From Vitrella brassicaformis CCMP3155 (taxonomy: Eukaryota; Protista; Chromerida), in NCBI GenBank assembly GCA_001179505.1, contig CDMY01000498.1:1-64000 (forward strand): a DNA stretch of 64,000 nucleotides. Direction: 5' to 3'. The stretch's first letter is position 1. Every line of letters starts with the position of its first letter. The notes beneath the pieces are model-generated. The model was not told the DNA's origin, did no database searches, and saw nothing but the letters and a program-made list of their open reading frames with translations. Made by a program: the position numbers and the translations under genes. Shown one piece after another: positions 40,095 through 42,115 of this stretch.

Positions 40095-42115
40095 TCACTG
40101 AATGTGACACCCAGCAGGCAGCATCGGCCTGCTCTCCCTACCCCCGCCCACAACCAGCCTCTCTCCCACATCCCAGTGACCTTCATCCTCGACGTCGATA
40201 CTCGCCACCCCCTCCTGGCTCCCCTGACAGCAGTATGTCCTAGGCGGTTCACACCCAGGCCCGTACACCATCAAGGGGTCGGCCAAAACCGTAGGCGCCC
40301 CGCTGAGTCGGCTAAGAGACACCAGAGGCTGAACGGAAGACGCCACCAGCCGGCATGGCGAGGACGGGCCGAGAGACGGCGACAGGGGCTCCGAAGGCTC
40401 CTCCCCCCGGGACGAGAGGAAGTCCAGATGAGACGCCTGTGTCTCCGTCTCGTTGCCCATCTCTGTCGACACCTCGCTGGGCTGCTCGTCGTCGCACTCG
40501 GGGGTCGAATTGCTCTTGATGCATGTGCCGACCAGCAGCGGAGGCTGTGAGGGAGCAGTGGGAGACGTTGCTGGGCGTGCGCGGGGCGGCGGGAAGGCCG
40601 GGGGCGGTGCCTCGTCCACTAGTGTGGCGTGGGACACGGGGAGTCTGCAGTGAGGGAGGGAGCCAAGCACACGTTAGTTCGAAGCGTGGATGCGACTGTC
40701 TGAGGGTGTGTTGTGGTGGCTCGGCTCACCCTGCTGTGCGATAGGCGATGACCTTGTCGACAAGTGACCGAAGGCGGCCGAACGACCGACGCTCGTGTTC
40801 GACCAAGAAGCAGGCTGTCAACTCCTGCACACACATCAGTAAGTAGAGCAGGACAGGCACAATCACATGCACAATCGGACCGATCCGTGCCATGGCATGG
40901 ACTCGCTCACCTGCAGTCGTGTTGTGTTGAGTCCATCCTTGGCGGATGTCACCATTGCGCCGCCCCACTTGAGACCCCTCGACACGCACCCCTCGCGCAC
41001 TCCGTCGATGAGAGACCGCCAGGACGACACGCGAGCTGACGGCTGGGCAGGGGGTGGGGCTGGTGACGGCCCCGACGCGTTACCATCATTACTGTCGGAA
41101 GCAGCCATGGCTTGCCTGCAGCCATGCCACAACAAGAATGAACAAGAAAGGGAAGGTGTTCGTTCGTATTGCGTTGCGTGCGTCTTGTCTTCCCTTGCCA
41201 GCCAGCCAGCCAGCCATGTGTCCCCGACTCACTGACTCACCTGTCTTGCTGGTTGAGCAGGTCGGCCTTGCAGCCCACCACGACGACCAGGGGGCTGCCA
41301 GTGGTGGGTGAGAACACACCCTGACCGACATGCCCCGCAACACCCTCAAGCCACCTCTCGCACCGCCTCATGTCCTCCCCACTCAGCCGCGTCACGTCGA
41401 CACACATCATCAGCACGTTGCACCCACGCAGCAAGGCGCTGGGCAATGTCGACATTGAACCACCCTCCGAGCCTGGCGCCCCCCGGCGGCCCCCCACATT
41501 CCAGCCGGAGCTGCCCCACATCTGCAGGTTGATGCGGCCCTCAAACGCCTTGCCGCGAACGCGGACGTGTGAGGCGCCCATGGCAAGGCGGAACAGGGGA
41601 GGCGACGGGGCGGGGGTGGCGGCGGCGGCAGGGGGGTCGCCGTCGATCCACTCACAGTGGACACACCGCCGAATGAGGGCGTTCTTGCCGGCACTTGGTT
41701 CGCCGAGCAGCACAGCCTTGTAGATACGGTCGAAGGGGGGAGAGAGGGAGGGGCTGGGGAGAGCGGGGCCAGTGGCCTCGGACTCGGGGGTGGCCTTGGC
41801 CTTGGCGTGGATGCTCTGATGCCGCAGGAGGGAGTACAGACTCCGCCACGTCAGGAGGTCACACTTGGACGACAGGGTCCGCCTTTGTTGAGGGTTGGCG
41901 AGCAAGTCGAGGATGCCTGTGGAAGACGCGCTGGTGCCCGTCGCATCAGAATCGCTGAGGTGGGACTGCACCAGGCGCTCGAACGAGGCCCTTGTGGCCC
42001 CGCAGGCACAGCGGTCGACACCCGACACTGCCATCAGGTGGGAGGTGGTCCGCGCGTCATCGTCGACCAATCTCTCGAAGCTGAGGATGTTGCACCACGC
42101 ATCAGTGGGTAGCAT
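40095..42115 (-). CDS. F-box-like motif + degenerate Rab/Ras-fold small GTPase + low-complexity tail
   Basis: MLPTDAWCNILSF; G1 YKAVLLGEPSAGKNALIRR; G3 [25 protein letters not shown]; G4 VVVGCKADL; G5 VTSAKDGLN in the next in-phase exon. Confidence 0.8.

Follow-up and report, generated by a model that had tools for sequence, protein, structure and literature searches.

At positions 42115..40095 on the minus strand of a 64,000-nucleotide window of Vitrella brassicaformis CCMP3155 (contig CDMY01000498.1, whose coordinates are identical to those of the window) lies one gene of four exons. Its product is the 574-amino acid (aa) uncharacterised protein CEM17862.1 (A0A0G4FT52), the middle part of which is very likely derived from a Rab GTPase. 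In an exhaustive protein search, the translation of exon 1 gave one match, CEM17862.1, with which it is identical over residues 1-291. The four exon pieces were translated separately and placed on the database protein at residues 1-291, 293-360, 361-391, and 393-574, and CEM17862.1 served as the query in all full-length analyses. Exon 1 (41241..42115, minus strand, as are all the features of the gene given below) begins with the ATG at 42115, encodes residues 1-291 plus two nucleotides of codon 292, and ends at the donor AG/GTGAGT (41241/41240). Exon 2 (40911..41115), for residues 292-360, lies between the acceptor CAG/G (41116/41115) and the donor CAG/GTGAGC (40911/40910). Exon 3 (40730..40824) encodes residues 361-392, with the putative C-terminal helix of the GTPase-like domain, and exon 4 (40095..40644) encodes residues 392-574, followed by the stop codon at 40097-40095. 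The three introns, of 125, 86, and 85 nucleotides, are all of the GT..AG type, and within the first of them there is a short (GGCT)n microsatellite, ggctggctggctggctggc, at 41188-41223.

The gene is transcribed and spliced. All three splice junctions are present in contigs of two sequencing runs that are apparently RNA and come from one study (X1 and X2), and they are missing from two DNA runs (X3 and X4), in which the locus is unspliced. Three more transcript assemblies (SRR646408, ERR558152, and JGI 3300017148) contain an unbroken open reading frame (ORF) of 1725 nucleotides that encodes the identical 574 aa protein, and at least four data sets contain the transcript. Comparison of the four runs revealed no base differences. 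Because the genome assembly and the independent DNA and RNA data sets are identical, sequencing error is excluded, as had been maintained in an earlier reading of this stretch made from its letters alone (the sequence-only reading) for the altered GTPase motifs described below. The bias in GC content at the third codon position (GC3) is strong in exons 1, 3, and 4 (0.81 in exon 1, vs 0.55 at the second position), and the frame of 574 codons is open across three introns in DNA of 62% GC; exon 2 shows no such periodicity (0.63/0.65/0.66 at the three positions). We conclude that this is a real and expressed gene whose model is correct.

The 5′ untranslated region (UTR; 42116..42451) is unspliced and at least 336 nucleotides long, the gene beginning at nucleotide 337 of transcript L003, while the 3′ UTR (39479..40094) has about 600 nucleotides, with one X1 contig spanning from 39479 through every spliced exon. 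Because the 5′ UTR is unspliced and an in-frame upstream ORF (uORF) within it ends at 42232-42230, the ATG at 42115 is taken as the main start. An upstream exon or a longer N-terminus was considered and ruled out, as contigs cover 41540-42427 without a joint and the upstream in-frame ATG at 42352 leads only to that stop. The uORF itself, of 40 codons, runs from this ATG to the TGA at 42232-42230 of the minus strand, in frame with the main ORF; its stop lies 114 nucleotides upstream of the main ATG, and it might damp translation.

The putative Rab-like pseudo-GTPase domain occupies residues about 128-392 (40730..41734), covering exons 1-3 and introns 1-2. The motifs on which the sequence-only reading had relied, namely LPTDAWCNILSF at the N-terminus, GEPSAGKN, WGSSG, CKAD, and TSAKDG, were all found where it had placed them. 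The first GTPase motif (G1, or P-loop), GEPSAGKN (41681..41704; residues 138-145), aligns with GDSGVGK[S/N] of Rab1A. The P-loop Gly and Lys are kept, and the Ser/Thr is replaced by N145, whose codon is AAC at 41683-41681, exactly as had been read. In place of the G3 motif WDTAG the protein has WGSSG (41504..41518; residues 200-204), when equated by eye with LQIWDTAGQ of Rabs, so that G201 (GGC, 41515-41513) stands where the G3 Asp belongs; by the same equivalence, the catalytic Gln has become Trp in WGSSGW (residues 200-205). The G4 motif, CKAD instead of NKxD (41261..41272; residues 282-285), keeps the Lys and the Asp and has Cys for Asn, and the G5 motif TSAKDG (40932..40949; residues 348-353), encoded by exon 2, is intact. 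Further pairs with the Rab consensus were drawn by eye: LQMWGSSGW with LQIWDTAGQ, AMGASH with switch I TIGVDF, VVVVGCKADL with LLVGNKCDL, and VTSAKDG with ETSAK. Judged in this way, four residues of the nucleotide site appear to have been lost, i.e., the P-loop Ser/Thr, the switch I Thr (now Ala), the G3 Asp, and the catalytic Gln, and the Asn of NKxD would be lost as well.

The Rab-like character of this domain is also seen, weakly yet consistently, in database comparisons. When residues 120-400 were searched with phmmer against the Protein Data Bank (PDB), the listing at E<=10 comprised 37 sequences, 32 of them Rab or Sec4 chains. The top match was 3sfv, an engineered Rab1A S25N, with an E value of 0.0082, or 0.015 with residues 120-400, and its chain A was aligned to residues 117-152 of CEM17862.1. 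Rab1A S25N ranks first because it has GKN in common with the Vitrella protein; the best solved-structure match of this natural protein is, in other words, a laboratory dominant-negative mutant. Two colinear blocks align to Rab1A in phmmer, and they include FDRIYKAVLLGEPSAGKN at the P-loop and FDRIYKAVLLGEPSAGKNALIRR. Between them, CEM17862.1 has about 28 more residues than Rab1A (152 to 221 in the former vs 37 to 78 in the latter). The second block begins at residue 221, just ahead of LLRGC, the counterpart of RabF4. As judged by eye against the RabF motif definitions established in the literature, LQMW, LLRGC, and MCVDVT resemble RabF2, F4, and F5, and equivalents of G1-G5 follow one another in the canonical order, while equivalents of RabF1 and RabF3 were not recognisable in CEM17862.1. 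The inserts are Pro/Ala-rich at switch I and Gly-rich at switch II. In Rabs, the G4-to-G5 distance is about 30 residues; here it is 63, with about 35 extra low-complexity residues across intron 1.

The Pfam matches are partial and fall in the correct order along the protein. The Roc family (PF08477) matches with 12.8-14.9 bits, below its cutoff of 27, over profile positions 1-24 (P-loop strand and helix). It is followed by Ras (PF00071), with 12.9-15.5 bits, below its cutoff of 21.6, over positions 62-123 (end of switch II to G4), a stretch that includes CKAD. Several results warn against too much confidence in a Rab-derived core. No family model attains its curated cutoff in the Pfam scans; segments 176-292 and 318-395, when searched singly with phmmer against the PDB, recovered no Rab; and the single-sequence AlphaFold2 (AF2) model of residues 1-400 has a predicted local distance difference test (pLDDT) score of 38, which makes it unusable, so the fold is not shown by it. 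The order of elements in this low-confidence model fits beta2-beta3-beta4-alpha3-beta5-alpha4-alpha5, a weak observation. Matches of the two single segments to fucose lectin, gyrase B, and farnesyl-diphosphate synthase (E 0.01-3) were rejected as Gly/Trp-rich or chance similarities, and a CbiG match to the 68 aa of exon 2 (19.8 bits, with the cutoff at 261) was set aside as noise from low-complexity sequence. Weighing all this, we consider it very likely that residues about 128-392 are a Rab-derived GTPase-like domain. The sequence-only reading had spoken of a complete Rab/Ras fold, which is right as to a Rab-derived domain in the middle of the protein and overstated as to its completeness, given the sub-threshold family matches and the lack of a confident three-dimensional model.

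A loss of the Mg2+-dependent switch is probable. The surviving GxxxxGK, K..D, and SAK elements tell against this in one respect, as they could still permit Mg-independent nucleotide binding, and the protein might then be a nucleotide-binding Rab-like protein, constitutively loaded and non-hydrolysing, working Mg2+-free or with substitute ligands and controlled by its expression or turnover. Such a protein would make use of phosphate and guanine contacts that are all kept (GxxxxGK, the K..D of G4, and the SAK of G5), and non-catalytic pseudo-GTPases that bind nucleotide are a recognised class (PMC5593906, PMC12490416). However, three Mg2+/gamma-phosphate contacts appear from the alignment to have gone together (at N145, at G201, and at the Ala of switch I), Cys stands for the Asn of NKxD, and a change from Ser/Thr to Asn is known to cut nucleotide affinity sharply, as in Ras S17N and its Rab equivalents. 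We therefore regard nucleotide binding of this kind as unlikely, and a core that no longer switches as the better account.

The C-terminal part of the protein, encoded by exon 4, is a disordered tail of about 180 residues, rich in Pro and Ser (15% and 13%, respectively), in which no Pfam or NCBIfam match was found. It ends, directly ahead of the stop codon, in CHIQ (40098..40109; residues 571-574), a candidate farnesylation signal of the CaaX type with Cys at position -4, an aliphatic residue at -2, and a terminal residue acceptable to farnesyltransferase; a CaaX box in which X is Gln suits this enzyme, as in CENP-E, CENP-F, and Rab28. Rabs typically end in a CC or CXC geranylgeranylation site, which is absent from this C-terminus. 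A hypervariable tail with a prenylation box is the usual end of Ras-superfamily proteins, and the tail and CaaX end of the Vitrella protein therefore support a Ras-superfamily ancestry and suggest a membrane anchor. A Cys pair, YCCQG, is also present in the tail, about 45 residues upstream of CHIQ.

No relative of the protein was recovered. A phmmer search of exon 1 against 1.84 billion representative proteins returned CEM17862.1 itself and nothing else, word searches of 5.8 billion clusters, in which exon 1 and then the full protein served as query, gave the same result, and a locus scan of metagenome contigs found none. The homologues that the sequence-only reading had hoped to compare were thus missing from all the searched protein and metagenome collections, and with them any sign of selection on a given feature, which must also be set against our interpretation. 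The gene is single-copy, specific to Vitrella, and a fast-evolving orphan of one species. An orphan of this sort might be young or decaying under relaxed constraint, i.e., transcribed and spliced without a maintained protein function, its motif losses being the erosion of a duplicated Rab. The empty searches agree with erosion, as do the several low-complexity insertions and the flat composition of exon 2. Against it stand the long frame kept open across the introns, the GC3 bias of the other three exons, the recurrence of the transcript in several data sets, and the retention of the CaaX box and of G4 and G5, which would not be expected to survive erosion. Decay thus seems improbable.

The part of the protein that precedes the putative Rab-derived core is more difficult to interpret. 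Residues about 2-50 (41966..42112) were read from the sequence as an F-box-like N-terminus, beginning with LPTDAWCNILSF (residues 2-13) and reaching LMAVSGV. They are followed by a putative helical linker at residues about 60-110 (41786..41938), for which both AF2 models, themselves of low confidence, show helices at 65-73, 75-84, and 87-107, again a weak indication. A signal or transit peptide and N-myristoylation were considered for this end and rejected, as it has no hydrophobic core and no Gly2. An F-box signal was found in comparisons based on ESM. With exon 1 as the query, FBX4 and F-box clusters head the ESM-feature neighbours (0.80-0.81); next come a cluster labelled 'F-box only protein 4-like', which has Arf hits, and one that combines Ras with a SOCS box. 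For residues 1-115 alone, an F-box cluster is second among the neighbours (0.85). Of the ten structural neighbours listed for the Atlas ESMFold model of these residues, six are F-box proteins, with template modelling (TM) scores by query of 0.42-0.50.

These residues may instead be a lineage-specific helical extension of 120 residues on a Rab-like pseudo-GTPase, in which LPxD..IL resembles an F-box by chance and no link exists to the Skp1-cullin-F-box (SCF) ubiquitin ligases. Profile comparison, which the sequence-only reading had proposed as a check, agrees better with such an extension. No F-box, F-box-like, or related family (PF00646, PF12937, and relatives) gave a Pfam match at E<=10 in any of the three scans, of the whole protein, exon 1, and residues 1-115. 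Residues 1-115 had no PDB sequence match in phmmer at E<=10, and the single-sequence AF2 model of residues 1-120 has a pLDDT of 42, which makes it unusable too; its LP motif is free of helix, as are residues 1-13 in both AF2 models. ESM scores below 0.9 are leads only, shuffled proteins reach the range of 0.80-0.85 a third of the time, and the two Atlas results rest on the same language model and are not independent of each other. On the other hand, the F-box signal recurs with the N-terminus alone and among the ESMFold neighbours, the top neighbours of the whole exon are specifically FBX4, which itself combines an F-box with a GTPase-like domain, and both the position of the motif and the order of domains (F-box, helical linker, and binding domain) are as expected. 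A study of Toxoplasma Skp1, moreover, describes F-box proteins of alveolates as difficult to recognise by sequence and credits Vitrella with genes of the Skp1 modification pathway (PMC11570480). We place the F-box slightly short of an even chance, and a plain helical extension is a possibility to be taken seriously, if a lesser one. The F-box assigned by the sequence-only reading is thus supported by language-model neighbours, as leads, and is detected neither by the Pfam nor by the PDB sequence searches.

The substitution in the P-loop recalls the dominant-negative Rab mutants, and the sequence-only reading had gone on to propose a decoy receptor, in which a naturally dominant-negative Rab fold would lock a Rab guanine nucleotide exchange factor (GEF) of the DENN, Vps9, or TRAPP type and deliver it to SCF for ubiquitination. 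N145 matches exactly the S25N substitution of Rab1, whose mutant chain is the best PDB match, and the possible F-box would provide the other half of such a device. Dominant-negative Rabs with Ser/Thr changed to Asn, however, trap GEFs through intact switch regions. Because these mutants hold GEFs by their native switch surfaces, which are the most remodelled part of the Vitrella protein, a GEF trap is unlikely here: native switch I, interswitch, and switch II are needed, and this region has been rebuilt with the extra residues between the two Rab1A-aligned blocks. The unrecognisable RabF1 and RabF3 equivalents (by eye) and the absence of any homologue add to the difficulty, and we hold the decoy to be the most improbable of the accounts weighed here.

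The explanation that we prefer, and to which as a whole we give an even chance, is that of a Rab-descended pseudo-GTPase acting as a membrane-anchored adaptor, with a possible degenerate F-box. The core would descend from a Rab GTPase turned pseudo-GTPase, with inserts that break switch I, switch II, and the segment between G4 and G5, and it most likely neither coordinates Mg2+ nor cycles between GTP and GDP. The dead GTPase fold would then probably be a fixed protein-binding module that offers a docking surface, and farnesylation of CHIQ would tether the protein to a membrane. More tentatively, the possible degenerate F-box, together with the helical linker, might recruit Skp1. Provided that the F-box is real, the protein would play the part that FBXO4 has in animals, namely that of substrate receptor for an SCF ubiquitin ligase. 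The fullest version of this, in which a chromerid would have built an FBXO4-like receptor independently from a Rab, farnesyl-anchored and with a dead Rab fold, bearing nature's counterpart of the laboratory Ser-to-Asn mutation, that captures a Rab regulator or effector at the membrane for ubiquitination, seems to us a long shot.

The known system closest to this arrangement is FBXO4, which binds its substrate by way of a small GTPase domain that is atypical (PMC7086354). The proposed order in the Vitrella protein of F-box, helical linker, and a GTPase-fold binding surface devoid of a switch is like that of FBXO4 (PMC7086354), and the sole link between the two is the position of the FBX4 clusters as the closest ESM-feature neighbours of Vitrella exon 1, at the scores given above. 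The PDB phmmer matches at E<=10 include no FBXO4 chain, and the search of the 1.84 billion representatives yielded no relative. A further difference is that the domain resembles Rabs in Vitrella, while Arf hits were obtained for a mollusc FBXO4-like cluster; the long disordered tail and the CaaX box are also additions of the Vitrella protein, and all the FBXO4 clusters seen were from animals. The resemblance, given a real F-box, is possibly convergent. A protist protein that likewise unites an F-box with a GTPase domain of the Ras superfamily is TbFRP of the Euglenozoa, with the order FYVE, F-box, and Ras-like GTPase (PMC3593210). Its GTPase domain has been treated as an ordinary Ras-like one, with no motif losses reported (PMC3593210), and phmmer against the 1.84 billion representatives revealed no sequence relation between it and the Vitrella protein. 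Proteins with a Rab domain and an F-box or U-box have also been reported in Legionella (10.1101/350777). These effectors share with the Vitrella protein the joining of a Rab fold to an adaptor motif for cullin-RING ligases, and they differ from it in being bacterial and in having conserved Rab features. Rab40, which consists of a Rab and a SOCS box, shows the same joining, but its GTPase is active and its box is C-terminal. The sequence-only reading knew of no description of this architecture in chromerids, and to that extent it stands; as a statement about fusions of an F-box with a GTPase-like domain in general it does not, since these are known from FBXO4, TbFRP, and the Legionella effectors.

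The Rab family, of which Rab1 is a member, and its engineered Ser/Thr-to-Asn mutants supply the best sequence matches of the protein, with an aligned P-loop block and with G4 and G5 in place. It departs from them in being without the G3 Asp, the switch I Thr, and the catalytic Gln, in its scores below the cutoffs, in its approximately 28 and 35 extra residues, and in having CaaX for CC/CXC and an N-terminal extension of 127 aa. Pseudo-GTPases with a role as interaction modules form a well-known class (PMC12490416, PMC5593906, PMC4080450). Those of class i (CENP-M, the psGD of AAGAB, and the pG domains of p190RhoGAP) are comparable to the Vitrella protein in their GTPase fold, their degenerate G motifs, and their use as modules for protein-protein interaction. 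They have lost most of the G motifs and are conserved in many species, whereas the Vitrella protein keeps the G1 Lys, the K..D of G4, and G5, and is without relatives. By sequence it falls outside all these families, and it is best described as a lineage-specific, Rab-derived variant of the pseudo-GTPase theme.

Both neighbouring genes lie on the plus strand. The convergent neighbour, at about 36479-38400 (13716-15637 of L001), codes for a histidine phosphatase of 482 aa (PF00328, His_Phos_2). A transcript contig (L002) covers this gene and that of CEM17862.1 tail to tail, which indicates either that their 3′ UTRs overlap or that the two were merged in assembly. The divergent neighbour, at about 42670-46954 (5162-9446 of L001), encodes a Pro/Ala/Ser-rich protein of 1226 aa for which there was no Pfam match; only about 220-250 bp separate its start from the 5′ end mapped for the CEM17862.1 gene, and a bidirectional promoter may be common to both.

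The Vitrella protein is a curiosity with known parallels and no new kind of system. The pattern of its motifs and the parallel with FBXO4 make it attractive. Its weight is limited because it is an orphan of one species, no homologue was found by which selection might be shown, and its architecture has precedents in animals, euglenozoans, and Legionella. Should the F-box prove real, and the dead Rab fold as well, the FBXO4 design, with a GTPase fold reused to bind the substrates of an SCF ligase, would have arisen a second time independently. The protein would then also offer a natural case of the Ser/Thr-to-Asn change that cell biologists engineer into Rabs and would be of interest to those who study pseudoenzymes and membrane traffic in alveolates.

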